From assembly GCF_964204645.1 (NCBI RefSeq), contig NC_134033.1, positions 15,570,655 through 15,634,654 on the forward strand: 64,000 nt of DNA, read 5' to 3'. The stretch comes from Tubulanus polymorphus. Taxonomy: Eukaryota; Animalia; Nemertea. Every line of letters starts with the position of its first letter. The first letter of the stretch is position 1. Shown here one piece after another: positions 2,408-36,900 of the stretch. A model generated the notes under the pieces. It saw only the letters and a program-made list of their open reading frames with translations, was not told the origin of the DNA and made no database searches. The position numbers and the translations under genes are program-made.

Positions 2408-4278
2408 TGCGCAATCGCGCACCAGTGATCTTCTTGTATCTCCGTAACAAACTTGTATCTGTGGATGCTGTTATTCTTTATGTTTCTATTGTATTGTAAA
2501 TCAACTGATTTGTATTGTTAAATGTTGTTTCAGGCCGAAATAAAATCAATAAATCTTCTGCTAAACTCTATCTTTCTTATGGAGCATCAACTCTTTCACT
2601 TTCATTTCAGTTTCACTTGACTTTTTGCCGAAAAAAATGATTCATTTGATTTCGACAAATAGTGTTCAGTGATGGCTTGATTTTGTTAATTAACAAAGGA
2701 CAAAGAAGCTTTCTGGTCGAATGACTACGTTATCCAGTGATGAGTCTGCTTATTGTAGAATAACACTTGAAAATTGCATCCTATTTGACAGTTCTGCAAA
2801 CCAGGAAGTGTTGCTAGCATAAACAACAATACTGAGCTGTGGATATTTCCTATACCTTAGAAGAGAGTCAATATATTCAAACAGGTTCGAATCCTTATTT
2901 TTAGTGTTGTATTACGCAGTGACGCGCGGGGTGGTCGGTCGCGAATTGTCACTAATTCATTTCAAAACAAAGTAGCTCAACCTAAATTATACATTTATTC
3001 GAAACTCACTCGCATTTGAACTATATTTTTGGATAAAAACAATTTCTACTCGAAGCATAAGGTTTGAACAGTAATTAAGCTACTGTTCCTCTTTTATTCC
3101 CAGAGGGACCACTATGCCGCGACCGTGGTGTCCCATGCTTGGACCCAGTAATTACTGATACGGATTCTGAATGATCCTGATGCTTACTTAGCCTTATTAT
3201 ACATAAAATGCATGATACGACATGATCGCCATCTATTGGAATTTCGCTGAACTGTCAGATTTATGGAATCGCCAATAACGACGATTCGCACTGAACCATA
3301 TTTCACATGCGCCATCTTTTGCTAATGAGGGTCATATCATTTAAGAACGGGGGCGTCCCAGGCTCGAATCCGGCTGATTCCTAGAGCCACCAACTCTTCC
3401 TGATTTTCGGTATTTCGTAACTATTTATGACAAAAAATGCTGTTTTGATTTGTTTGACGAATACAGAAGTATGAAACATGTTACTGAGGGTTTTGGTAAT
3501 TGAGAATTTTCTTTCATATTTCGATAAAACCTTTGAACAAAATTCAATTGTTACTGATAGCACTTTTCGGATGTTGGTACGTGTTACCACAGCATTAAGA
3601 TAGAATTAGCTACAAGTGATGATTAGAATAAAACACATTGTCGTTTTTCTCATGAAATTTCGGTCAACGGACAATGACCTCGGGCTGACACTGATCCCCA
3701 GTTCCAGATCATAGAGGGTGAACGCAGAGGTGTCGTAGATTCGTTATTAATCGTTATATTATTCGTCGATTAATTATCGTTACTGATACCGATTCCAGAG
3801 TGACCCTGACCCGTTGCACACATATTAACTCAAGAAAATTTGCCATATCACATGAGGTAAAGGCATTTCGGCAGATCGGAACTAACTTAATTCACGGATT
3901 CTCATAACGCTAGAGGCCATGCTTAGATAAGCCATCCTCGCTTGCCAGGGTTTGATTGCCGCCCGCCCGAAGTTCACGCCAACACCTCGCCGTAAAATAA
4001 GGCCCTTCATCGGTTTATGCCCGAAGATTTCTTGGGCAGACAGGTTACCGTTTAAGCGGCATTCAGTAAATTCACCTTCAACATTTTCAAATTCATTTCG
4101 CATAAATCATGGTTGTTGTGAAATGTACCGGAAAAGATAACGTTGATTCTATTTGAACGATATAATATATTTTTATCACTGACAGTTTAATCGTTTTTTC
4201 CAAGCTGTGAAATTCTCATCGAAATCGACTCGTCACTCGTTCATTTCGTACATCGCTCCGTCACAGAAAGGCATCATC

Positions 4279-5744
4279 ATGAAAATCAGTGTGACTTTAA
4301 TGTTTTTAGCTTTCATCGGTGTTTCATTAGTGAGTATATCCACATCTTTTTAAAGTTTAGGTCTGCATATGATAATGAAACACCGCACTTGGTGAAACCT
4401 TGGAGTAATCATCATTCAAATGATAAGGTGAAGCCATTGAAACTCTCTTCCGTGATTTAAAGATAATATAAAACCGCACACTAAAGATTATGAAGATACT
4501 GCCTGAAATGTTTCCTCGCTAGTATAAAGTCGAATTTAGTAAACCCTTAACCCGGGACCCTAAACTAGTTCTGTGATTCGGGGTTCTTTCAATTCCGTCT
4601 TTCGTGGGGTGTAGCGTTGCGGTGCTACTAAAATTCTAAACGGTCACGCTGGAATTAAAAAAATTAAGAATTCAAAGCCAAGAGACTCAGGGTCGGTCCT
4701 ATGGTCCATTGATCGCGTGGTGCTCTTGCCGTTGCATCGCACGGGCGCTCCATTCAGAACAATGGAACGTTCTCTTAAAAGTCTTCGGATTTAACGATTT
4801 ATCGCGGTTTTTCGTCCCCCGACCAGTTCGTTGTACTGTTCGAGGTTCCAGTATAATGATGCACACAGTGTGCTGCGAGGTTCCAGTATAATGATGCACA
4901 CAGTGTGCTGCGAGGTTCCAGTATAATGAGGCACACAGTGTGCTGCTAGAAACTGCGGGTGGGCGTTGCCTGCAGAGTGTCTTGATTACTTCAACGACGC
5001 CTATCCCTTAAACGAACCCGCCGAACCCGGTTACACCATCCTCCCCCGGCAGGGATTCGAACCTGATGGCATCGAGATTGCCACGACACGAAACCCTGCC
5101 ATAATCGACCGTGTGCGCAGATACATGCGCAGTTCAGATGATGTGATTTTTAGCCAATCAGAAATCCCGTTTATTTTAGCCCGGGTTTTTCTCATTTAAA
5201 GTTATTTTGAAATTTGCCTCAACGATTATACAACGAGCAATCTGATTGGTGCCGCCAGTTTTCGTTCGGAAAGCTGCGCATGTACCTGCGCACCCGGTCT
5301 ACTGATGCAGGGGTTCGTGCCGTGGCTGAGTGTAGCGATGCCATCAGGTTCGAGTCCCTGCAGAGGGAGGATGGGTTTCACGGGCCTGAATTAATTAGTG
5401 ATGTTTCGATGAATTGTTTGTTGAATAATGAATTAAAGAATTAAAGGGAAATGTCGATTTTAAGTTGAATTGTTTATTTATAGGCGGTGCTCGACAAGGA
5501 ATGTCATTCAGACGACGAATGCGGAATATCGGAATGTTGTATGATGACTGTGGGGGCGCCACATGAGATGCCCGGAATTTGCTTCAACGCTCATTTGAAA
5601 GACGCACCGTGTGACCCGCGACAGTACGAAACCGTCATGGGCAAACATTTGTTCGACTGCCCATGCGCTAAAAACTTGAAATGTGACAAAAATACCGATC
5701 CTGAACATCTCGATTCGAGACCAATGATTTGTCAACCAAAATAG
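4279..5744 (+). CDS. secreted prokineticin/astakine-like (colipase-fold) 10-cysteine peptide, 103 aa
   Basis: Exon 1 4279-4329 encodes signal peptide MKISVTLMFLAFIGVSL, then gtgagt. Exon 2 5484-5744 follows tttatag in phase 0: AVLDKECHSDDECGISECCMMTVGAPHEMPGICFNAHLKDAPCDPRQYETVMGKHLFDCPCAKNLKCDKNTDPEHLDSRPMICQPK*. Cys spacing C-x5-C-x4-CC-x13-C-x9-C-x15-C-P-C-x5-C-x15-C matches the prokineticin/MIT1 framework. Confidence 0.88.
4841..4948. repeat. ~35-bp tandem repeat x3
   Basis: CGAGGTTCCAGTATAATGATGCACACAGTGTGCTG occurs three times. Confidence 0.85.
5036..5374. mobile_element. foldback/MITE element with ~110-bp imperfect inverted arms
   Basis: CCATCCTCCCCCGGCAGGGATTCGAACCTGATGGCATCG... at the left end is the reverse complement of ...CGATGCCATCAGGTTCGAGTCCCTGCAGAGGGAGGATGG at the right end. 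Confidence 0.7.
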
Positions 5745-6037
5745 ATTGTTAATTAAAACATGAATAAGTATCGTATGTACGATTTTTCATTTATTGATGA
5801 TGATTGATGATGATGAAGACAAACGACTATTTCTTGAACTACCCATCCTCGCTTGCCAGGGGTCCGGTATCACTCCCGAACTCGCTTCAACCAGTAGTGG
5901 GTTCGAATCCCTTGACGGGTGAAGATGTGAACTACCCGGCGTGCCGGCCCGCTTTACATTAGTTCGCAGAAATTACGTTAGGGGACCGTATGGTGCTGCC
6001 ACCAAGCTAACCAGCTTGCCGGTCTCTACTTCAGCTA

Positions 6038-6113
6038 TAGACTGGTTGTCGGTCTCTATCTTCAGTTAGACGGCGAATGCAGGTGGCGCAGAATTGGACA
6101 GGCGACCAGTCTA
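6038..6113. mobile_element. small TAGACTGGT...ACCAGTCTA TIR element (copy 1)
   Basis: Inverted termini; a closely similar copy lies at 18659-18724. Confidence 0.6.
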
Positions 6114-7287
6114 TCCAGTTATAGGGATGTCCTGGGTTCGAACCTAGAAATTACTGACGCTGATTGTGAGTGATCTTCCAGGGACTTCCAGGACCAGTAT
6201 CAGTGATCCGTGGATACGGGAGTTGGTCATTTTTATGGACTTTCGCATTCGAAATTTGCTATCGCGAATATTCTTCCTTTGGTACAAATAACTTCCGAAC
6301 GAAGCTTAGTTTCTCTATGCGCTACTAAAACGAAGACCTACTGCACTCATCACTTGGGGCACTATCCGTGTATTTAACCACCTCTGTCAATGAGTGTAGG
6401 CTATACCAGATATAAACAAAGGCATATCAATCATAAATTGGTCGGTTTTCTCGGGTGCATAGTCTTCGTTTTAGAAGTGCTTTGTTTTAGTAACACTTGT
6501 TGCTTAACTAAATGAATGACAAATTTCAAAATCAATCATATTTATTCTCATACAACAATTATACAAAATGCCAGGAGTGCTCGAGGAATTATAACGTAAG
6601 CTCCTCAAACCCGTGGACTTTGAAAAACAGCTAGTCCAACCACGATAGGCGTATAAACTATAAACGAGAGTTTACGCCATGGTCCAACCATAGACTCTAA
6701 AACAAAAAAGTCTATTGCCCTAACCATGGACTCAATTTTCCATGGCCCCCGCACTAAAACCAGAGATACCTGGCCAAACTCTGGAAAGCGTAGGATTAAG
6801 TAATCAATCTGATTTACATTATTTACATCATTCTATTTTCACATTCCGTAACAAATTATTAACGTTTCGCTTATTTTCTCAAATTTTAATAGTGATTTTA
6901 TTTCTATCAATATACGTATGTAATTGTACTAACTTAAAAACCACAATTGTTACATTGGTATTTCGAAGTCTTTATCTACGATACATTTCCACTTCAGCTG
7001 ATTTATACAATTTGCATCAATAGGAAAATAACAAAAATACACAGAGGATTGTAAACTTTGATCCATAAAACACCGAAAATTGAAAATTATGAGTTATTTA
7101 AAAACAGTTCAAAATAAAAACACTAAACCTACAAATTCACTCACTCTGGAAAGCGTAAGGTTAACTCATTGATCAATCTTATTAATTACAAGAAAACTTA
7201 AAACATTTGTCTAATTTTCCTCATCTAAGAGATTTCTTTAAACATTATCAACTACCTTATTTCACAAATGTTACATTTGAAACAAAG

Positions 7288-7536
7288 CAGGGTCCGATCT
7301 AAGCACTGGTCCAATTGCCCGGGACAAGTAGGGCAATATGTAGGTTATCATTATCACTCGTCCACCGGGCTTGTGTAATTCTATGTCTCAAAGCTTTTAT
7401 CCCACTCGATCCAAGGGATGATTGTATCACAATCGGACTGCTCATGTAGGGCAAGTTGATTTTCTAGGGGGCAAGTGATAATACATATATGCTTGCACCA
7501 AGGTCAAGTGGCATTTATTCATTAGATCAAGCCCTG
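7288..7536. mobile_element. hAT-like MITE (CAGGGTCCGATCTAAG TIR), copy 1
   Basis: CAGGGTCCGATCTAAG...TTAGATCAAGCCCTG; homologous, in the opposite orientation, to 63669-63925. Confidence 0.7.
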
Positions 7537-8081
7537 CAAACTATTATAAAGGTTTTTCTTCGTGATATTTTAACATAAATCAAGTATCTTCATATAAGGG
7601 TTTGACTGACAAAGCTACGGTAACTTCTTAATTGTATTATTCGACTTGATACATTTAGTACATCTACAATTCAGTAAATACTTAATATTTGTACGTCAAC
7701 TCTGGCCTAACGTATTCTATGTTTCCTAATTATGTGATATCTACACACACAAATAGCCACATTTGACTATGTTTAACTATGGTAAGTTCGAAGATTAAAC
7801 TCACAATATCATGTTGAAACTATATCTCAGTTTAGGAGTTAACTCAACAGACCTACGAGTTCAAACAAGGCGCTCGACGCGACCATTTACCCCATGTGAC
7901 TACATGAATACAACCATGGATCGAAGACCAATATCGTGAATTAATGGAGCTTAGCTTTTATTAGACTCTCATATTGCATAAAACATTATAAAATAGTTTC
8001 CTCGAAAACACTATATTATCCATCAGACTGGTATGAAAAAGGGTAATAAGTAACAAAAAACAATACTTTACTACAGAAGTC

Positions 8082-8285
8082 CACTATTGTCTTCGCCGCT
8101 CCTGGATTTCAGTGTTTATAACATGCACTATTGTTTATGCTGCTCCTAATAAGATACACTATTGTCTTTGCTGCTTTTAAAACAGCGTTTATCCTGAATC
8201 AGTGTTTATGAGATAATCCCGTAGCTGAATCAGTGTTTATAAGATTCACTATTGTCTCTGCTGCTCCTGATAAAATGTTTTATAG
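8082..8285. repeat. degenerate tandem repeat (CACTATTGTC..GCTGCTCCT / ATCAGTGTTTAT)
   Basis: About four diverged copies are visible. Confidence 0.55.
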
Positions 8286-9870
8286 AAATCAACCACCGAT
8301 TGTAGAAGTATCCATCGTTGAGTGATTAATCCGTTGCTGGCTCCTCAACTTCTCATCTGGGCTTCTTGTGAGTGTCTTCTTCAGACCATTATTTCCGAGA
8401 TGTAGTTTGGCTGAAATAAAGTGAAGCAAAACATTTCAGACAGATTTATCATAATTTACCGGTACATGTCATTTCAAATTACAAGCCACCGTGTTTTTCA
8501 CAAAGTAAAATTCATTGATGTCAATTGCTGATTTAAACCCTAATAATTAACTGCAGTAGTAGGACTAGTTCATCACTGTTTAAGACTAATGAAGATAAAA
8601 GTTTAAAGATAAAAGATCAGCCATGTGGACCGGTAAATAGATTTTGATGATAGTCACTTATCAAATGATATTCATATGAGGCCCGAAATTTCTGCATACC
8701 AGTAATTTCATGTATATCATGTATGTCAACTTACCTTTAAAGATTGCTGGGTTCAGTTCTGGCCTCTTCTGTGTCCTGTGCCAGTTTGTAGATTTGTCGT
8801 GCCAGGTTGTAGATTTTGGACTAGTTGATCTCAAGCAGGGCTTTTTCTTATAGTTGAAATTTAGCTGCAATCATTAAAAGATGGATGTCCTGTTATCACA
8901 AAACATTTCATTTAGAATTAATCGAAATAATCCATGAAAAATCAACTTACATTTCAAGTTTGCTGGGTTCAGTATCGGTTAGAATGTTCTCGGTTTATGC
9001 GTCTGACTTGGATTGTTCTGTGGGCTGAGCTAATCTGTAGATTTTCTGATTAGTAGTTGATCTCAAGCTGGGATTTTTCTTATTGCTGAAATTTAGCTGC
9101 AATGATTAAAAGAAGATATCCTGTAATGACAAAATATTTCATTTAGAATCAATCATAATAATTCCATGGCTATCAAGTTACCTTTTATGATTGCTGGGTT
9201 CATTATCGGCAATTATCTTATTAGTTCGTTGGTTGATAAGTTCAATTCTAGTTGGCCTCATCGGTGTGCTGTTCCAGTTGGTCGATTTTGGACGAGTAGT
9301 TGATCTCAAGCTGGGTTTTTTCTTTTTGAAATTTAGCTGCAATGATTAAAAGAAGATATCCTGTTATCTCGCAAAATTTCATTTAGAATTAATCATAATA
9401 ATTTCCATAAAAATCTGGGTTCAGTATCGGTGACGATCTTTTAGATAGGTTAGATATCAAGCTGGGCCTTTCCAGATAAAGTTTAGCTGAAATGAATAAC
9501 AGAACGATATTCTGTAATTGCAGAATCCTTTCTGCATCATACATTGTAATTTACATTAGTATCAACTTAACTTTCAAGATTGCAGAGTTCAGCAGCGACT
9601 AGGATTTTCTTGACGGTGGTTGAATCTTCAGAATCACTTAATTGTCTTCTTGTCTTCTTCGACGAAGCTACAAATGAATAAAACAACATTCTGTAGTCAC
9701 ACATTACTTCATTACTCCTAATTTACATGTATATCAACTTAACTTTCAAGATTGCCTAGTTCAGTATTCTTTTTTCGGCATCTTCTGTAGTCGCCTTGTT
9801 GCATCTTCGTCTTCAACTTCTTTGGAGTCCTGAAATGAAAAAAAAGAGAAGAGCGATGAAAACCTGGTAC

Positions 9871-10649
9871 GGAACAAAACTAATGTCCGAAAGCTTTTCA
9901 GCTCTCCGTCGCCGGTCACATGCCGAGAACACCAGACAATGAGCCAGCCAGGAATATACTGCCCTCTACACGCCCTCACACAGAACGCGAAAACCAGAAT
10001 GACAACGCCTCACATTCCCCATCTAACTGCAGGATGTACTGGGCGACGTCAGTAACTGACACACCTGTAAAATTGCACGAAACACAAATAGCGCAGTACA
10101 ACCAGCTTGACCGGGTTGAGATTCAGGATCTCAACTAGCACTCAAAAGCGTGACAAGAGACTTCATCCACTGACCGAGGTTGTCACAAGGACACAATGAA
10201 ACTAGCACTCACAAGCCGACAAGAGACTTCATCCACTGACCGGGGTTGTCACAAGGACACAATGAAAACTAGCAATCAAACTAGAAATCAAAGAGCGTGA
10301 CAGTAGAATCATCCCTCAGCCGACTCAGAATACCAGAAACAAAGAGCGTGACAGTAGAATCATCCCTCATCCGGGCGGTCACAAGGACACAATGAATGCT
10401 AGTAGCGTGACAATCCAGTATAACCGCTCCATTTGTATCCCGCGCAATCTCGCAGATATGCCCGTCATTGACATCACTCAGCACACACTTTGTAGATAGG
10501 TGGGGGCGGTGAGGCCTCGTCATCCTGGTTTTCGTGTTCCGTATGAGGGCGTGTAGAAGGCAGCCATTTCCTGTCCGACTCTTTGTCTGACATCCTCGAC
10601 ATGTGACCGGCGAAGGAGAGCCGACGCTTTCGGACATTAGTTTTGTTCC
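9871..10649. repeat. long inverted repeat (two ~235-bp arms) derived from an RTE-type LINE ORF2 3' end
   Basis: Arm 9871-10105 aligns to the reverse complement of 10415-10649; the first 24 nt are identical (GGAACAAAACTAATGTCCGAAAGC). The arms translate as RRLSFAGHMSRMSD...RPH then (frameshift) GTRKPG*...TYLQ, like the C-terminal RRLRFAGH...HGxRxPGR segment of RTE-clade reverse transcriptases. Confidence 0.85.
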
Positions 10650-11651
10650 AGCTAACGTTGAAATTCGACAGAGAAATCGGCCCTGAAAAACATAACGGGT
10701 TAGAAGCTGAAAAATAGAACGGATTAACGAACACGGAACAGTACAGGACAGCACGGAGACGAACGGTAACACATAAAACATAAAGACGTCGTTCCTCAGG
10801 AAGCAGGAACAGGAGCGCAGCGAAGATCGCCAGGAGAATCCACGGAAGCATGTCTGCACAGTGTGAGAGAGCGGAGGTGAATGAGCTCGCCTATGCTTAT
10901 ACACCGTGGTCAGCCGGTGACGTATTCCAATTGTGATTAATAGCGCGTGCGAATGATATCAACAACCCTGAAAAACCGCAATTGTGTCTCTATTGTTGAA
11001 TGGATTTACATTGAGAGCTTATAGAAGGTTCTACTGCCAGGTTGAATACGCGCCAGTAGTCAGCTGAACAATATCGTGGAACTTTGATATAAGGCCATAG
11101 AATAGATTACTTGATCCTCAAAAGCTCCCCTCCGAATTTAAAGCCGCCGCCTGTTTTTTTTTTCTTAACTGTTAGAATAATCTATAAACTATACCGACAA
11201 GTAGCTTTTCAGTTCAAAATTCACACCAACACAGGTCTTCATATCATATAGCTTTTGGGATATTTCATATCATACATACGGTACCGGTATGAAATATAAC
11301 ACTGTCTCCCAGACAATTTTACAACTTCTGACGAGAATCACGTATTTGCTGCTCTATGAAAAATCCCCAAAAGCACCAAGGTTTATCAGCTACTGTAATG
11401 TCGTTACTAAAACTATGCACTACTAAAACGAAGATCGAGAAGGCATGCACACCAGGTTATTTTTGTTAACATCGCATGTATATTCAAAACAATGGATTAT
11501 GATGGCAGTTAAAGACGAGTTGGATGAATACACGTTGAACTAAACTCTTCCAGGGGTCACATTTTAAGCTTGGCTGAGAAACTTGATCGTATGGACGCTA
11601 GCGAGAGGCATCAATGTATAGATTACGATTCATACTGTAACACCCGCCTTA

Positions 11652-16300: not shown

Positions 16301-17862
16301 AAAACCTAAAACATGAAACATGAAAAAATAACCCAAAAACATGAAACATATTGTGATACACAGGGTGGAAACTTTCCAACCATTTACAAATCCAGAGTTT
16401 GCCCTGATTTATCCATGTTATAACACAATATGTTCAAAATGGTTCGATGTTTCTTTTTCCCAATGGGGAGAGACCAGTGAAGAACCTTCGACGAAAAAAC
16501 TCTGTTTGAACCCATAAACCCTGGATTAACGAGACCAGTGGCTTAAACCACTCGGCCACTGCGCCTCTCCACTGAGCCATCATATTAACAATGAGAAACC
16601 ATGGTTATAACTGACAAATTTCGAAATGTTCTGAGGGTCTATAATTTTGCTTCCACATCTATGAAACCAACAGTAGAACACTTACCGGGCATTTTAACGG
16701 TGTCCGGGAGCTGACCGAGAACGTGAGACGTCAATTGTCCGTTGCTGCCGAGCGTTAACAACGTTATATTCTGAACGCGTTCGCGACTCGTAGAGGGCGC
16801 TGTATGCGCCGGCATGCGACTGCCGTACATACCGACGGTGATGATACCGTGCGCGAACTGCATCCCGCGTCGCGGCATCAGATTCAGATCGCTCTCGTGT
16901 CGCCGATTCGGCAGCATGTTGAACGTGCGAACGCTCGCGATCAGCGGCGCGACTCTGTCGTCGTCCGAGAGCAATGCGTTCGTTTCGATCTTATCGTGCA
17001 GATAATACGAGTCGAGCAGCGCGAGTCGCACGTTCGCGAACACGGCGTAGACATTTGCGCGGCGCACGTCCAAACTGTGGTCGATCCATTTCAACGCGGC
17101 GCGAACGACGAACTCCTCGCTCGGGACGTTCAACGCGTCGGACGCGAGCGTTTCGAGCAGCAGGTCAACGGGCATTTCGGCGAACTCGGTCGTGTTCGAA
17201 ATCGCGACGAAATTCGAACAGATCTGCGTCCAACAACGCGTCGCCAAGGTGACGCACAAGTGCGCCTTCGCGAATACGAACATCTCGACGCAGTTACCGA
17301 GGGAAACGTGTCGCACCATGAAATCCTCGCAGATCCGTTTCAGTCCGTCCATTTGTAGCAAGTTGGCCGCCGATAACAAGTCCTGCACGTTATCCGTCGT
17401 GTAGCAACACCAGCCGCCGTATACGTACTCGAGTACGAGGTCGAGCGTGTCCTCGCTCATCGCCATGGTGATGACGCGTTCGCGCGACTCGAGGAAGTCA
17501 TGCGAGAACATCGCGCGGAAAAACGGACTGCTGACGATCAACACGATCTTGTGACACGGGAACTCGCGATCGCCAGCTTTCAATACGACGTCGGTGAACT
17601 CTTTCGAGTCGTACAGTTCGAACAGTCCGTTGAGTAACGCCGTCGATCGATGGCGGTCGTACTCGTGGTCGGGCGCGCGGTCGTCGTCGCCGTCGACAAT
17701 ACTGACCGATTGGTTCGCCTGCGCGAGCACGCGTCGATGAGACTGCAGGTTGTCGCCGTCGGTTGCCATGGCGGCGAGCGGCTGCGCGGGTCGGTGTCTG
17801 TTGTAGAGATGGCCGAATGGAAGACTGAGTTGGGATGAAGTGTCGCTATTATTGTCGGACAT
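13335..17862 (-). CDS. kelch-like BTB-BACK-Kelch protein (CUL3 adaptor family), ~681 aa
   Basis: Exons 17862-16686, 16256-16061, 15440-15219, 14974-14874, 14704-14585 and 13564-13335 join in phase (1,2,2,1,1). BTB: FTDVVLKAGDREFPCHKIVL...SPFFRAMF. BACK: NCVEMFVFAKAH...SEEFVVRAALKWI. Kelch repeats: VYIAGG, MYAIGG...VEKYDPMSDTW, LYIFGG, CYDPAFDVW, IYICGG, LYMISG. A probable non-coding first exon ends at a GTGAGT donor near 18548. Paralog not determinable. Confidence 0.9.
13788..14063. mobile_element. piggyBac-like MITE, copy 1
   Basis: TTAA|CCCTTTCAGTGC...GCACTGAAAGGG|TTAA; second copy at 50623-50849. Confidence 0.85.
15560..15920. repeat. AGACTGGTCTTAAGTTGTTAGATTGG-family tandem repeat (~52-bp units)
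   Basis: Same family as 13020-13280, 30595-30860, 31372-33155, 34230-34630, 39950-40070, 48550-48685 and 60200-60450. Confidence 0.75.
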
Positions 17863-18039
17863 CGAGATGAATCCGAGCGGATTGATCTGTCGAAAAATAA
17901 ATAGTAAACAGGAATTGAACTCACAGCAAGTGATTAACGGATCAACGACACAGGAATTAGTAAAATTAAAATTAGTACTACGCTTCACTGATTATGAGCT
18001 GGGCCCTGAGCCTGAGATCAATCTAAGTACTTGGACTTG

Positions 18040-27900: not shown

Positions 27901-30900
27901 ATATTTCAGGGTATGTTGAGATATTTTGGGGTGGGGGGGTTGTACCCCTGCACCCTCCTCTCGGATGCACGCCCCTGTGTTCGTCAGCTGGTCCGGTCAG
28001 CCAGCCTGTCAGCCTGTCAGCCAGTATACTCTGATACACTGTTTCAGATTTCATATTAATCAAGGCCACTGTGTGTAGTGGATATCGTCTGCTCGCAGCT
28101 GGTGGTAGTTTCCTACGTACATGCCTCGTGTCACGTCACTTCTAGGAATGTACGTCTGATACCTCAGCCGTTATCGCCCGCTGTTGCCGTTAGTTACGGC
28201 GTATATCATTCCGCTGATGAGAACGCACTGGATATCACCCGGTAATTCCCGTCTCTGGAAGCTCGCCGCGATGGGGCGAGTTAATCGAAATTCGCAGAAC
28301 GATATTTTAGGGAAGGGGGTCGATATAAGTCATAGGCACGGGGGGGTGAGGGGTGCAGTCGCTCGAAGGTTCCCCAGTCTCGCTATGTCAACTATCAAAT
28401 ATGCATAGAGATTGTTTATTCAATTTATTCATCATAAAACCTGTACATACAAAGATCGTCAATTTTTTTTTCTTTTAGATTTTTTTTATACAGATTAATT
28501 CGATTTCTATCAAAAATAATATACATAATAATTGATAAGAATTGACATAATAGAAAGCCTATACATCATCTTTATCTGGCAACACGCCACATGAAGAAAG
28601 TCGATGAACAAAGGACGGAATTTTGCCAGTGCGGCTGAAATACTCAAGATAAACAACATTAAGAGAAAGAATGCAAAACGCGTCTTTTTGCAACTATCCA
28701 TTGGTAACTCAACCCGACTTTTGAGCATATGTCGCTAGTGGAATTTAGGAAATGGTTTTTAATGTGGGTTTTAAGTCGAATAAAAGATATTCTATAAACG
28801 ATATAATGAATGGAGGCGCTCCTTTTTCTTCTCGGAAACTTTAAAAGAAAGATTTCTTTAAGATCTACGGTTAACCGCAATCTGTAGTTTATTTATTTCG
28901 CGGATCTCAGATAATGTTCCGCTCTCAGCTGTATAGGTGAGAATTGCCGGAATCTGTTGTTGAGTCGGCATAAAGAATCTGAGAGGAAGCGACTCTTGAA
29001 GTCGTTGAATGACGACGACTCCTGTAGTCAGTAATTACGTGAATGCATTGATAATAATACTGACTGATTCAGTGATTCTCGTTATTATTTGAATCATCTC
29101 GTGTTTACGAGACGTTCAATCGTAAGGTGACGAATTCAATCCAGGTCATGGTACGTCATGAATGGATACCTCATTCTCTCTTCTCCCTCCCTCTTCTCCG
29201 TCCTCTCTTTCTCGTCTCTTCCTCTATATCCCTCTCCTCCTCTGTCCCTTCTTCCTCCCTCCCGCTCTCTATCCCTCTTCTCTCCGCTTTCCCTCTTCTC
29301 CCTCTCCTTTTCATCTTTCCCCCTTTCTCTTTTCTCTCCCTCTTCTCCCTCTCCCTTTCTCCTATCCCTCTTTTCTCTCTCTTCTCTCCCCTCCCTTTCT
29401 TTCTTCTCACCCTCTCCTCTCACTCTCCTCTCTCTCCATTCTGCTCTGTCTCTCTGAGTCTCTATTATGATTATACGAGCCGCTCCTTGGCCTCAGGCAG
29501 CAGATCTCTCACAAACACTCCCTCACTTGCCAGTGCTCGATTGATTCTAATACTGCAGGCTATTGATGAATCATCAAACCCCGATGCTGGATTTATTTCT
29601 ACATCTTGTGTTAAATCATATTCAATCATTCATTGTTCATTTCATTCCGGAACTTAAACCAAAAAATGTGGATCATTCAGAAAAGAAGGGAAGGGAGAAG
29701 AAACAGTTGTACGGTTATGCAGTTGCACAGTTCTTTAATTATGCAGTAGTACGGTTGTACAGTTGCCCAGTTGTTTCGCTATGCAGTAGTACAGTTGCAA
29801 AGTGCACAGTTGTGCATTCGTACAGTTGTGCATTCGTACAGTTGTGCAGTTGTACAATTGTGCAGTAGCACAGTGGTACAGTTACTGCATTTGTACAATT
29901 GTGCAGTAGTACAGTTGTTTGGTTATGCATTAGTACAGTTGCACGGTTGTACAGTTGCAAAGGTGCACAGTTTACAATTGTGCTGTAGTACAGTTGTACA
30001 GTTGCACAGTTGTAGTTGTGCAGTTGCACAGTTGTGCATTTACCATAGAATGATGACAGAGATAATTTTGGGATTTTCTCATAGTTGAAACTGGTCGTTG
30101 TAGTGTTTATTGTATCTGTTCGAGATGAATATCATCATCATTTTCATCATCATCATCATCATTTTCATCATGCGAGTCTCTATAATCATACATACGCATT
30201 AAATCCACATAAAGAAATGAAAACTATTGTGTGATTTGGTTGCTATAGTAACCGCAGTACGCTGCAGTGCTGGCTGCTCTCTGGTATCGCGTGTCAGTCA
30301 GATTGTCACTCTCTCTGTTAGACTGAATCGACCTTCATCTTCGTCATTGGCCCAGTAACCTTTACGAATCATATTTTAGCGTATAATTCGGGGTGATTTG
30401 CACTGATTTGTCTTAAGAAAAATGTTTTGCTGTTTTTGCTGTTAGCTCTCACAACCTTCCTTAAAAGGTGTAAGATTTTCGACTTATGACCGGTATTAGG
30501 ATTTGAGACTACTTTTAGACTACTTTTAGACTACTTAGGACTTCTTTCATGGTTGCACTTGCTGGGACAATGGGGCCGGTTTGAATTATGGCTTAGCTTA
30601 AGCTCATTTTGGTTCTATTTTTAACCAACCTTTACAACTTAAGACCAGTCTAAGCTCATTTTGGTTCTATAGCCAATCTAACAACTTAAGACCAGTCTAT
30701 GCTCATTTTGGTTCTATAACCAATCTAACAACTTAACACCAGTCTAAGCTCATTTTAGTTCTATAACCAATCTAACAGCTTAAGACCCGCGTTTAAGCTG
30801 ATTTTGGTTCTATAACCAATCTTAACAAAGACCAGTCTGAAGATTTAAGGCCACTTTTATCTAATCCCTGTTTTCGTACGTTTGATATTTTTCAGGGCTA

Positions 30901-33900
30901 TAAAAGCGTTTCAGCACGTGTTGTATCAGGACCCGGGTTTCCCGTGCGCCAACGAGATTCACAACCGGCTGGGATTGATCTTCAAACTCAACGGAAACTT
31001 CGAAAGCTCGTTGAAAGTAAGTTCTCTCTCTCCCCCTCTCTCTCTCCCCCCTCTCCCTCTCTTTCTCTTTCCCCCTCTCTCTCTCCTCCCTCCCTCCCTC
31101 ACTCTCTCACTCTCGATTGTGAAACCTTATTCCAGGTCGAAACTAATCTTTCGTTATCAGACATCAAATTATCTGGAGATCTATTTTTAGCATTCGTGGT
31201 CTAGATTTGATTATTCAGTGAACTTGAATGATATCATTTTACAATTAATGCAAATTTTTTTTTTCAGCATTTCAGACAGGCTTTGAACGATTCGAGTCCG
31301 TGTTCGCTGACGAAGGGCGAAGGTACGTTTCAAACAATGATTTACTGGAACCTCGTTGCTACAAACTTCTGGGGCCGGTTGCATAGTCATGACTTAGACT
31401 TAAGACCAGTCTAAGACCAACTTAGTTCTATGGCCAATCTAACAACTTAAGGCCAGTCTAAGACCAGCTTAGTTCTATGACCAATATAACAACTTAAGGC
31501 CAGTCTAAGACCAGCTTAGTTCTATGACCAATATAACAACTTAAGGCCAGTCTAAGACCAGCTTAGTTCTATAGCCAATCTAACAACTTAAGACCAGTCT
31601 AAGACCAACTTAGTTCTATGACCAATCTAACAACTTAAGGCCAGTCTAAGACCAGCTTAGTTCTATAGCCAATCTAACAACTTAAGACCAGTCTAAGACC
31701 AACTTAGTTCTAGGACCAATCTAACAACTTAAGGCCAGTCTAAGACCAGCTTAGTTCTATAGCCAATCTAACAACTTAAGGCCAGTCTAAGACCAGCTTA
31801 GTTCTATGACCAATATAACAACTTAAGGCCAGTCTAAGACCAGCTTAGTTCTATGACCAATCTAACAACTTAAGGCCAGTCTAAGACCAGCTTAGTTCTA
31901 TGACCAATATAACAACTTAAGGCCAGTCTAAGACCAGCTTAGTTCTATGACCAATATAACAACTTAAGGCCAGTCTAAGACCAGCTTAGTTCTATAGCCA
32001 ATCTAACAACTTAAGACCAGTCTAAGACCAACTTAGTTCTATAGCCAATCTAACAACTTAAGGCCAGTCTAAGACCAGCTTAGTTCTATAGCCAATCTAA
32101 CAACTTAAGGCCAGTCTAAGACCAGCTTAGTTCTATGACCAATCTAACAACTTAAGGCCAGTCTAAGACCAGCTTAGTTCTATGACCAATATAACAACTT
32201 AAGGCCAGTCTAAGACCAGCTAAGTTCTATGACCAATATAACAACTTAAGGCCAGTCTAAGACCAGCTTAGTTCTATAGCCAATCTAACAACTTAAGACC
32301 AGTCTAAGACCAACTTAGTTCTATAGCCAATCTAACAACTTAAGGCCAGTCTAAGACCAGCTTAGTTCTATAGCCAATCTAACAACTTAAGGCCAGTCTA
32401 AGACCAGCTTAGTTCTATGACCAATATAACAACTTAAGGCCAGTCTAAGACCAGCTTAGTTCTATAGCCAATCTAACAACTTAAGACCAGTCTAAGACCA
32501 ACTTAGTTCTATAGCCAATCTAACAACTTAAGGCCAGTCTAAGACCAGCTTAGTTCTATAGCCAATCTAACAACTTAAGGCCAGTCTAAGACCAGCTTAG
32601 TTCTATAGCCAATCTAACAACTTAAGGCCAGTCTAAGACCAGCTTAGTTCTATAGCCAATCTAACAACTTAAGGCCAGTCTAAGACCAGCTTAGTTCTAT
32701 AGCCAATCTAACAACTTAAGGCCAGTCTAAGACCAGCTTAGTTCTATGACCAATATAACAACTTAAGGCCAGTCTAAGACCAGCTTAGTTCTATAGCCAA
32801 TCTAACAACTTAAGACCAGTCTAAGACCAACTTAGTTCTATAGCCAATCTAACAACTTAAGGCCAGTCTAAGACCAGCTTAGTTCTATAGCCAATCTAAC
32901 AACTTAAGGCCAGTCTAAGACCAGCTTAGTTCTATAGCCAATCTAACAACTTAAGGCCAGTCTAAGACCAGCTTAGTTCTATAGCCAATCTAACAACTTA
33001 AGGCCAGTCTAAGACCAGCTTAGTTCTATAGCCAATCTAACAACTTAAGGCCAGTCTAAGACCAGCTTAGTTCTATGACCAATATAACAACTTAAGACAA
33101 GTCTTAAGATTCAAGACCACGTTTTGGACTTAAGCCATGACTGTTCAACTGGCCCCTGGGGACCTAAAAATCTGGGGCCGGTTCCTCACAAGTCGGTTTA
33201 GAGTTAACCAGTGGATTGTTGACATAGTGACAATTGAAAGTTCATTGTTACTGCAGATTTTATCCGCCGGTTATCTTCAACTAACTTTTGAGCAACCCGT
33301 TCCAGCTGTTCGTTATAACCGATAGTTACAGCGGAACTTCTAAACCTCCCCCTCCAAACTCCCCCTCCCTGTACGCTAAACCTCCCCCTCAGCACTTCAG
33401 TTCTCTCTATCATCTGTTGTCACGTACGCCAGTTGTTAGTGTGTCGAGGTCATTGACTAGTGGCAGCACTGTCTACTCAACTAATACCAACACACCTTAG
33501 TTCATAAGTTCAACTGTAGATGGCAGCACACTTCGACTTCTGCCACAATAGTCACAGACGATGAGCAGAAGACTGAGTTCCTGCAGTTGAACAGGGTCCC
33601 TACGACTCCTTGATTCCTTGTAAACTCCTTCGAAACCAAAAATGTTTTTCAAACTCCTTGAATACCCTTGAATTTGAATAAAATGCCCAAAAGTCCTAGA
33701 AAACTCCTTGAAATCAAGAATGACTGATTTGTAGGGACCCTGGAGCAACTCCCATCTTTTAGATTAAACTTATTAATATTACAATTGAGTTTGAGAGTAA
33801 ATTTCATAATTATTCTTTCGATTTAGCTGGTTTTTCTTAAACATGGATACTAACCGGAGACCCTTCGATGAATGTATAATTATTTTGTGTGTTTTTCAGT

Positions 33901-36900
33901 TCGGTTTCATATCGGACACCTGTTCGAAGTTGAAGGTCGCGTGAAGCAGGCGAAGGAATCGTACGAACAACTCGTGCAAATCGACAACATAACGAACACG
34001 GTTAAGGCGAACGCGTTACGACAACTAGGTACGTATAGTAAATATATCATTGTTTCATCGTAAAATCATTCAGTTTTAATTTTCATCGCGCGTTAAGTTA
34101 GATTTAGAAAAGAAAAAAATACAATTTCATCGAAATTTGATGAGAAATTTTAATTAGTTAATATGAAACTTCTTTGAATTTAAATATTTGTTCTCTAAAT
34201 CTGGCCTAGCATCCTATTTTATAAGAACTGGACTGGTTGCATAGTCATGGCTTTGACTTAAGACCAGTCTAAGACCAACTTAATTCTATAGCCAATCTAA
34301 CAACTTAAGACCAGTCTTAAGATTTAAGGCCACTTTTGGACTTAAGTCACGACTGCAACAGGCCCCTGGGGTTAGTTGCGCAGTCTTAGCTTGCTTCTAT
34401 AGCCGATCTAACAACTTAAGCCCGGCCTTACGATTAAAGACAATTTTTTGACTGACAGTAGGCCACTGGGCCCTGATTCAGGTTAACTTAACACACCTGG
34501 CTTATAGTTAGTCCAAAATGTGGTCTTAAGTCTTAGAATTGGTCTTAGATTGTCCCTAGAACTAAGATGGTCTTAGACTGTTGTTAGATTGGTTATAGAA
34601 CCAAAATGAGCTTGGACTGGCTTAAATCTGAGGTATCGCTGCAACCAGATTGTCGAAGATTTTCACATTCTGATGATTCAATGATTATTTTTCGTTTTGA
34701 AGGTTGGTTATATTTTACGTGTGATCAATTGGGCGAGAAAACCACACGCGAGACAGCCGCCGTTCTACACCTTCAGAAATCATTAGACGTCGATCCATCT
34801 AGTGGACAATCGTGGTACTATCTCGGCAGGTACGTACGCGCGCATAATACTACTAGTAACGCCCTCTACTGGCTGTAATCTGTATCGTATTTTGAAGAAG
34901 TAACGTTTTATTGTTTTATTTCGCTCAGATGTTTTTCGAGTTCTGGTAAAGTGCACGATGCGTTCGTCTCCTATCGGCATTCAATCGATAAAACAGAGGC
35001 TAGTGCTGACACCTGGTGCTCCATAGGGTAACTATCTTTTGAACAATGCCGTAAAATTATGATTAGTTACTGATAACGACCATATCATTCTCAATGACTT
35101 CAATGATTCAGTAAAATTACAATTGCCAGACCTTCTCATTCTCGATGACTTCAACAATTCAGTGAAATTATGATGCCTTCTCATTCTCAATGACTTCAAC
35201 AATTCAGTAAAATTATGATTCCTTCTCATTCTCAATGACTTCAACAATTCAGCAAAATGATGATGCCTTCTCATTCTTAATAACTTTCAACGATTCAGTG
35301 AAATAATGAAATGTGATGATTAGTGATGATGTATTGTATTTTGTAGAGTTCTATATCAGCAGCAGAATCAGCCTATGGATGCATTGCAGGCGTATATATG
35401 TGCCGTACAGTTAGATAAATCACATGTCGCCGCTTGGACCGACCTCGGAATTTTATACGAAAATTGTAACCAACCTAAAGATGCTTTGACTTGTTACGTT
35501 AATGCTGCCAATAACAATGGTAACTATTCTGATATTCTAAGTCAAAGACGTTCATAAAGATCGGAGGGAAAATCAGGCAATCTTGGATTTATTTGTCCCT
35601 GCAGGGAAAATTAGGGAATTCTGACTTTTTTTAAAAATCAGGGAAAGGTCAGGGAATTTTGTTGTCTTGTTGTTCTTGCTGGTGATGAGTGGCACAAGGA
35701 ACCTCTTGATAAGAAACAGCCCCCACTGAGGATATCTTATAATTCAATCAGGGAATTTGAATTTTTGGTGCCTTGTTGTTCTTGCTGGTGACGAGTGGCA
35801 CGAGGAACCTCTTGATAAGAAACAGCCCCCACTGAGGATATCTTATAATTCAATCAGGGAATATTTGGTCAAGGGTCAGGGAAATATCAGGGAATTTTGG
35901 ATTTATTTTTCTGTTCAGGGAAAATCAGAGAAATCTGACTCCTCTTGAAAATCAGGGAATTTTGAATTTTTGGCGTCTTGTGCTTGCTGGTGACGAGTGC
36001 CACAAAAGGAATCTCTCCATAACAAACAGCCCCCACTGAGAATATCTTATAATTTAATCGGGGATTGGTCAAGGGTCGGGAAATTAGGATATCTTGATCC
36101 GTATCGACGCCGCCCTTTTCAGACCATAAACTATAGTATTTCAACAATTGAATATTTTTCAGATTCTATCAATCCGAATTTGATAACTCGAATTCAGTTC
36201 TTACAGAAACAGTTGAGTCAAATTCCGATACAACACTTTCAAAACAAGTAAGTCACAGTTAAACATTTATTCACGCTGTTTATTCAATGTTTTCAAGGGG
36301 ATTTTTTGCCGTCGGTCTCCTGGCGGTTTTCTCACAAAGGAAGCACGATTCTTATTTTGATTCCGTTTGCTGATTTTATGCTGTGGAATTTTGTACGAAT
36401 CGCACAAACCCTCTAGACCACTTAGCCAGCCTGGCATGTTCTAATAATGATCATCAATCCACAAAGTTGGTCATCTTCCTATGAAACGCTTGAAGATAAA
36501 TGAAAAATGATGAATTAAAATCGATACCGAAAGGAAAATATTATTTGTTTCACGAAAGCAGTTATGATTATGGCGAAAACTTTTTCCCTAGTTTAACTTA
36601 TTTCTGCTGAGGTGGATTTGTTACTTAATGGTTATTTTCAATTTCTTGTTTTATATTTGAGGATAAACCTTCACGAACAAACCCTCTAGACCACTGAGCC
36701 AGTTAGGCACGTTCTATTAACGATAAACGCAGCTATCTCGTAGCTGTTAAGAGTTAAGTGACGGGTGTATACCACAGTACGCTCGTGATCTCCTCAGTTG
36801 AATATGGAACTGTACTTTCAGTCACCTCCCCTTGCAGACTGATTGTACTTGCAAACATTCCCTCCCTGCACATTTACAGGATACTTATTCGGTCATCTCC

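Follow-up and report, generated by a model that had tools for sequence, protein, structure and literature searches.

Why the two arms of an inverted duplication should differ in just the way that spares pairing in the RNA of one strand is the question raised by a fold-back in the genome of the ribbon worm Tubulanus polymorphus. A first-pass annotation had proposed a host hairpin-RNA locus, in which a fragment of an RTE-clade LINE had been turned into a maintained source of double-stranded RNA against RTE elements. We analyzed the fold-back in its window, the whole 64,000-nt stretch of contig NC_134033.1 (positions 15,570,655 to 15,634,654, forward strand) to which the coordinates below refer, and compared it with other copies in the same genome.

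Architecture and folding of the inverted repeat

An inverted duplication was found at the coordinates originally claimed for its arms, with an identity of about 76 to 78% instead of the roughly 75% first reported (Table 1). The whole fold-back measures 779 bp and its stem about 235 bp. A repeat search of the window recovered a 134-nt core pair (9898-10031 with 10491-10624, 79% complementary) and, outside it, the perfect 24-nt pair that forms a clamp at the base of the stem. At 76% identity, 24 straight matches would arise by chance with a probability of about 0.0014. The arms were compared by global alignment of 9871-10115 with the reverse complement of 10406-10649, which gave 183 matches and, besides transitions, 19 transversions and 7 gap columns. 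In the window copy, 32 transitions leave G:U pairs on the minus strand (20 A>G and 12 C>T) and 7 leave A-C mismatches (4 G>A and 3 T>C), a bias with a two-sided binomial p of 7e-5. The earlier hand count was therefore exact for the G:U pairs and slightly too high for the A-C mismatches, which it had put at about nine.

Table 1. Features of the fold-back and of the repeat that carries it, in window coordinates
Feature	Position	Strand	Remarks
Left arm (3' arm of the minus-strand hairpin)	9871..10105	-	Plus strand A+C-rich; most invariant arm among copies
Loop/centre	10106..10414	-	66-bp tandem unit x2.2 (10133-10280); 51-bp unit x2 (10286-10373)
Right arm (5' arm of the minus-strand hairpin)	10415..10649	-	Varies more among copies than the left arm
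24-bp clamp at the stem base	9871..9894		Perfect pairing with 10626-10649
24-bp clamp partner	10626..10649		From the repeat search
TATAAG, promoter-like only	10896..10901	-	In conserved sequence, some 45 nt 5' of the ATG
ATG-started 125-aa frame, hydrophobic N-terminus	10474..10851	-	Enters the right arm; most copies retain an open frame of about 150 aa; probably not coding
Polypyrimidine tract ending in CAG, acceptor-like	9830..9870	-	Highly conserved; immediately follows the hairpin
Exon-like unit, followed by GTTAAGT	9744..9829	-	First in a series of related units
Window copy of the dispersed repeat	6347..11269	-	Shortened; colinear with 7.5-11 kb copies elsewhere

The prediction that the minus strand would prove much more stable was borne out by folding. 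As RNA, the minus strand gave -443.5 kcal/mol (z -29) and the plus strand -328.5 kcal/mol (z -17), whereas single-stranded DNA folds gave -188.3 and -164.5, respectively, so that the gap between the strands amounts to 115 kcal/mol as RNA and merely 24 as DNA. Since the gap is far larger as RNA, RNA is a better fit than DNA for any structural role that the bias may have. The stem on the minus strand contains many unbroken helices of 18 to 31 bp, and the loop alone folded at -98 (z -2.8) on the minus strand and at -60.8 (z +1.1) on the plus strand. Within one transcript, the inverted repeat is thus predicted to be long enough to form an extended hairpin, as is required of an hpRNA/endo-siRNA locus.

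Two independent LINE insertions were considered as an origin of the arms and ruled out: in all 30 copies fetched from the genome, the arms have the same end points, the same perfect 24-bp clamp and the same layout. On this point the first-pass annotation, which had named insertions of different LINE subfamilies as an alternative that would overturn it, was sound, and judging from these shared features the arms are a single inverted duplication.

A module within a dispersed repeat family

A search of the same genome (268 Mb in 77 contigs) with the left arm gave at least 316 candidate matches, 40 of which were scored; all 40 are 98 to 100% identical and they lie on 10 contigs. Every one of the 30 copies that were fetched also carries the same loop and wobble bias, with homologous flanks on both sides. 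The peptide translated from 10477-10698 (minus strand, comprising the right arm and the stretch just outside it) gave at least 395 candidates in the genome. The 150 of these that were scored hold open frames of about 70 to 200 aa, none of them LINE-sized, and diverged family members exist, since places only 52 to 67% identical are among the matches listed, for example on contigs 1, 6, 7 and 8.

When 20 kb around each of eight copies was compared with the window, homology was colinear from about 6347 to 11250-11270, apart from interruptions by variable arrays whose unit measures about 235 bp. Among themselves, the eight copies share 7.5 to 11 kb. They have their left end, beginning GTGAAATGGGGG, in common, and likewise their right end, which lies about 1600 bp from the start of the left arm. 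An insertion at about 9556-9725 is private to the window copy, whose right end is unlike that of the other copies beyond about 11250. Many copies with a common interior and unrelated outer flanks, as found here, are what defines a dispersed repeat or transposable-element family. These comparisons show the 779-bp fold-back to be the best-conserved internal module of a gene-like, apparently non-coding dispersed repeat of about 5 to 11 kb; all large contigs carry copies of it, a few hundred altogether. The supposed single host locus is one of a few hundred near-identical copies of this module.

Within the repeat unit we detected neither LTRs nor long terminal inverted repeats, no ORF over about 155 aa, no tRNA and no Rfam match, whether at the gathering score or at E<=1. 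At the two ends of the repeat we saw neither a poly(A) nor a LINE-like tail, and we found no target-site duplication. The 779-bp unit was also considered as a mobile unit in its own right, that is, as a foldback element or MITE, with which it has in common two long inverted arms and perfectly matching outer ends. Unlike such elements, however, it never occurs alone, both flanks being homologous in 30 of 30 copies, and this candidate was rejected.

The arms had been thought to encode the C-terminus of an RTE-clade LINE ORF2, and the motifs RRLxFAGH and YTPSxGxRKPG are indeed visible by eye in two frames per arm. Pfam searches at E<=10 with all open pieces of both arms gave no match, phmmer against 1.84 billion proteins returned just one spurious repeat protein, and a word search for LINE similarity of the arms found none. 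The Atlas gave a lead, scoring 0.81, to an "endonuclease-reverse transcriptase" cluster, with nothing that identified the arms as LINE. All scored genome matches to the arms, among the matches listed, are copies of the same module, with no LINE-sized frame or trans target, and the RTE targets that the genome was expected to contain did not appear among the 150 scored peptide matches. The RTE-clade identity, read by eye from short motifs, is unconfirmed. Beside another copy, at 3840-6400 (plus strand) of locus L045, lies a frameshifted non-LTR retrotransposon with an RVT_1 domain, a cysteine-rich C-terminus and a (TA)n tail. This LINE, the only one found, was considered as a parent of the arms and discarded, as it is of a different kind and unrelated to them.

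The candidate TATA-like box, splice-like sites and poly(A) signal described for the minus strand can all be read in the sequence, the AATAAA motifs lying far downstream (7957, 7514, 6897 and 6541). The putative TATAAG, ATG and splice-like signals are on the folding strand and within conserved islands. Exon-like units related to one another occupy 8725-9790, each with a terminal GT-donor-like motif on the minus strand, and polypyrimidine-CAG sites occur on that strand twice before the stem and once right after it. With a GT 7 nt before its start and an AG 41 nt beyond its end, the hairpin could be intronic, although this is speculation. A search of sequencing runs brought up none registered as RNA that contains the stretch. 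Four runs compared with 6300-11500 (5,201 nt) consist of short contigs that look like DNA, cover exon-like and other parts to the same degree and have no splice-type joints at the proposed sites.

Origin of the wobble bias

The majority states of the 30 copies resolve the stem into 237 pairs, comprising 181 Watson-Crick pairs, 33 G:U pairs on the minus strand, 8 A-C mismatches and 15 transversion mismatches, so that 23 mismatches are still present. Because this family majority carries the same bias as the window copy (33 against 8, p = 1.1e-4), the bias must have arisen once, in the founder, before amplification. Transitions in the flanks, taken from the same family alignment, are strand-symmetric (71 of the minus type against 65), so the asymmetry is not common to the unpaired flanks over the period that the family records, which was the background check asked of it at the outset. 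Nor is there a strand bias (46 against 42 in sum) among the further inverted repeats of 224 kb, comprising the window and 160 kb from other loci. The ratio of transitions to transversions is also unlike that of its surroundings, at 41:15 in the stem against 88:91, or about 1, in other local inverted repeats. With the 15 transversions and a local ratio of about 1 as the yardstick, some 7 to 8 transitions of the G:U type are expected, and the 33 observed represent an approximately four-fold excess, whereas the 8 of the A-C type equal the neutral expectation. With the G:U type in excess and the A-C type undepleted, the pattern speaks for a directional gain and not for purging alone. Strand-specific deamination would produce such an excess, and so would positive selection for changes that disrupt the palindrome in DNA but leave the RNA helix intact.

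Variants among the present copies were classified in the same way. Singleton changes from Watson-Crick pairs yielded G:U on the minus strand in 14 cases and on the plus strand in 14, and shared variants from such pairs were 5 of the minus type and 6 of the plus type. RNAalifold applied to 26 copies gave a covariation term of -0.48 and compensatory changes in 1 of 307 pairs, a test that is not strong because the copies are too alike. The symmetry of recent changes and of the flanks, together with the lack of covariation, therefore suggests that individual copies decay neutrally. As far as these variants tell, the bias is neither renewed nor protected in the present copies, and the pairing is not maintained as had been supposed.

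Mean pairwise divergence among eight copies was 1.3% in the left arm, a value biased downward since this arm was the search query, and 2.1% in the centre and 3.4% in the right arm, which were not queries. It was 5.6 to 6.4% just outside the hairpin and 12 to 19% further out, with 5 to 25% over the flanks generally. A profile of 30 copies had the same conservation pattern, and in it two further islands were conserved, the acceptor-like tract (9830-9870) and the surroundings of the ATG at 10851. The density of singletons is lowest in the centre, and divergence grows with distance from the centre in both directions. The low divergence of the hairpin could reflect selection on the lineages that were active; gene conversion beginning at the palindrome could also account for it, and so could a recent mosaic origin.

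Individual copies differ in a few further respects. The right arm of the window copy has private indels at 10482-3 and 10564. In three other copies (L006, L017 and L018), the hairpin is 1004 to 1050 nt long, against about 776, through extra 66-bp units in the centre, which varies in unit number and hardly in sequence. Within 39 nt of the right arm (window-equivalent 10473-10511), two more (L002 and L030) have in common a patch of 7 changes, 4 of which restore Watson-Crick pairs. This patch could be a conversion tract from the other arm or the mark of an older subfamily.

The sequence context of the wobble sites bears on how they arose. At CpG steps, there are 7 cases of TpG opposite an intact CpG and 1 of CpA (p = 0.07). 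Decay of CpG is expected to be equal on both strands, and the 7:1 ratio hints at filtering on the minus strand. Given these seven TpG/CpG steps, C>T on the minus strand is the best reading of at least 7 wobble pairs, which makes an origin by A-to-I change only unlikely. Of the 32 wobble G residues, 10 have G as their 5' neighbor and just 2 have A, and no neighbor context fitting ADAR or APOBEC (TC/CC) was found at the wobble sites. G+T skew on the minus strand is 0.22 in the loop and 0.15 in the right flank, against -0.03 and -0.15 in the presumed downstream transcribed part. The direction of change as judged from composition was the opposite of that from a motif argument, and neither was relied on. 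An RTE-like C-terminus that could have polarized the arm differences was found neither in the window nor in the 224 kb of fetched loci.

We consider a constraint on the minus-strand RNA fold at the founder stage to be the best explanation, which we hold tentatively and at a little less than an even chance. The founder lineage would have been expressed as a minus-strand RNA, and its arms would have diverged while transitions leaving G:U in that RNA were tolerated or even favored. Such transitions would break the DNA palindrome and spare the RNA helix, and other changes would not have been favored. The hairpin would then be a working RNA element of the repeat, either as a cis-acting structure or as a source of dsRNA. 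A constraint is plausible because the hairpin is the least diverged part of the repeat, because the clamp is perfect and because of the uneven CpG steps, and the bias can be called specific to the stem and to one strand because neither the flanks nor the other inverted repeats have it. Against a founder constraint stand the lack of covariation, the symmetry of recent variants, the 23 mismatches that persist in the stem, the possibility that conversion or a mosaic origin lowered the divergence of the hairpin, and the form of the bias itself, which appears as an excess of the G:U type rather than as a deficit of the A-C type and which directional mutation would give as well.

Directional mutation is the main rival, and a serious one, even if we think it somewhat unlikely. 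After the inverted duplication, the minus strand of the founder or master copy would have undergone strand-specific deamination, mainly C>T, while exposed as the non-template strand of a transcribed unit or in a single-stranded intermediate of transposition or replication, and the hairpin would have no function. Any strand bias of this kind generates G:U or G:T wobbles in an inverted repeat automatically. Deamination would account for the surplus of G:U-type transitions over transversions at a neutral number of A-C changes, for the seven or more C>T changes at CpG, for the G+T-rich loop and right flank on the minus strand, and for recent variants with neither covariation nor a pairing-preserving bias. 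It is harder to reconcile with the strand symmetry of the family flanks, with a presumed downstream transcribed part whose skew is absent or opposite, with nearby inverted repeats that are unbiased and with the missing APOBEC-like context, and it leaves both the perfect clamp and the lowest divergence of the hairpin unexplained.

A more specific form of founder constraint would make the module a natural counterpart of engineered G:U hairpins, in which C-to-T changes in one arm break the DNA inverted repeat and the RNA still folds (PMC9263138). The stem would be a repeat-borne helix foldable on one strand, its DNA palindrome eroded by transitions, and it would be expressed, from many copies of an undescribed ribbon-worm element family, as a structured RNA or as a source of dsRNA/siRNA. 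We regard this full reading as rather unlikely. As in the engineered transgenes, transitions in the arms leave G:U pairs, so that the DNA palindrome is lost and the RNA helix persists, and G:U makes up about 14% of pairs here and 18 to 21% in two endogenous-gene constructs (PMC9263138). The engineered changes, however, are designed and confined to the sense arm, whereas those of the module are natural and apparently in both arms.

The original proposal, extended to many copies, would have a fragment of an RTE LINE kept as a host source of hairpin RNA (endo-siRNA) that silences RTE elements, and we find it improbable. Uninterrupted helices of the length present on the minus strand would suit it, as would the left arm, which would be antisense to the putative LINE frame and is the more invariant of the two, and the resemblance by eye to LINE ORF2 C-terminal motifs; long inverted repeats are, moreover, known as a source of hpRNA/siRNA (PMC8728187, PMC10317233). 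Yet the module is not a single locus, its LINE origin is unconfirmed, no target is among the 150 scored matches and the copies seem to decay neutrally. Whether the bias reflects selection or mutation, the reading as a unique host hpRNA gene should be dropped.

Editing by ADAR is less probable still. In that case, the dsRNA stem of a retrotransposed element would have been hyper-edited (A-to-I, read as G) and copied back, converting A:U to G:U on the sense strand only. The resulting footprint would be confined to the stem and to one strand, as seen here, and would be in keeping with a repeat that has neither LTRs nor terminal inverted repeats. However, the wobble pairs best read as C>T at CpG do not fit it, the neighbors 5' of the wobble G are unlike the preference of ADAR, and the repeat has no poly(A) or LINE-like tail at its ends and no identified reverse transcriptase partner.

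Hardly credible, finally, is a real small protein gene (125 to 150 aa) holding the right arm, with the left arm as a copy of its coding end in the 3' UTR and the bias as a by-product of coding: frames of about 135 to 190 aa are open in most of the 150 scored genome matches, the 52-67% identical ones included, and the ATG region is conserved, but variants of the 125-aa frame fall evenly on codon positions (19/15/19, with a synonymous share of 0.30 against 0.28 expected), it has no homologue by phmmer in a set of 1.84 billion proteins and no match to a Pfam family, copies differ in which of two frames is open, and coding constraint on one arm predicts no G:U pairing.

Known hairpin systems and neighboring features

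Inverted repeats carried by repeats are common and ordinary in themselves. What is unusual here is that a strong one-strand bias limited to the stem was fixed in the founder of a large family, that the 24-bp clamp is perfect and that no part of the element has diverged less than the stem. The module resembles the hpRNA loci of Drosophila (PMC10317233, PMC10292708) in its long inverted repeat, its stem of a few hundred bp and the gene-like signals on the folding strand. Those loci, however, are host genes of single or few copies with known targets and sequenced small RNAs, whereas the module exists in a few hundred copies within a dispersed repeat and has arms just 76% alike and no target among the matches scored. 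It also resembles long inverted repeats borne by transposons (LIRBase, PMC8728187; TE-derived endo-siRNAs of mosquitoes, PMC4423592), which are likewise carried by repeats and whose many copies could give dsRNA. Two features of the module we did not find described for transposon-borne siRNA sources: the strong wobble bias on one strand that was already fixed in the family founder, and the conservation of the stem, which exceeds that of the rest of the element.

If the bias is due to selection, the module would be a natural case of an RNA helix kept while the DNA palindrome was broken. It would also be a new structured-RNA module, carried by a mobile element in a phylum that has been little studied. 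If mutation is the cause, the inverted repeats of this genome could record strand-specific deamination in the life cycles of its elements.

Several features near the window copy and near other copies were also recorded. At the left boundary of the repeat copy lies a unit of about 190 bp (6305-6494) with 32-nt inverted ends (GTTACTAAAAC...CTACTAAAACGAAGAC). One of these ends recurs just right of the copy (11403-11434), and the same sequence opens the left end of other copies. The unit may be a MITE-like element or part of the repeat terminus.

A unit of about 47 bp is repeated in a long tandem array at 30639-33130, and an inverted copy of this unit lies 1.4 kb away (34510-34632); the differences between the two are without strand bias. 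The segment 20001-22000 is very strongly skewed in composition (GC skew +0.43, AT skew +0.23) and holds a 328-aa frame with no Pfam match. A 271-aa frame with two dsRNA-binding (dsrm) motifs (locus L046, 3146-3958, plus strand) and the right arm of a further copy of the module lie about 2.3 kb apart, a proximity that is probably a coincidence. Lastly, about 6 kb from the repeat in the window, an intron-less frame of 449 aa (16639-17988, minus strand) encodes BTB and BACK domains of the Kelch-like family and is apparently a normal host gene.
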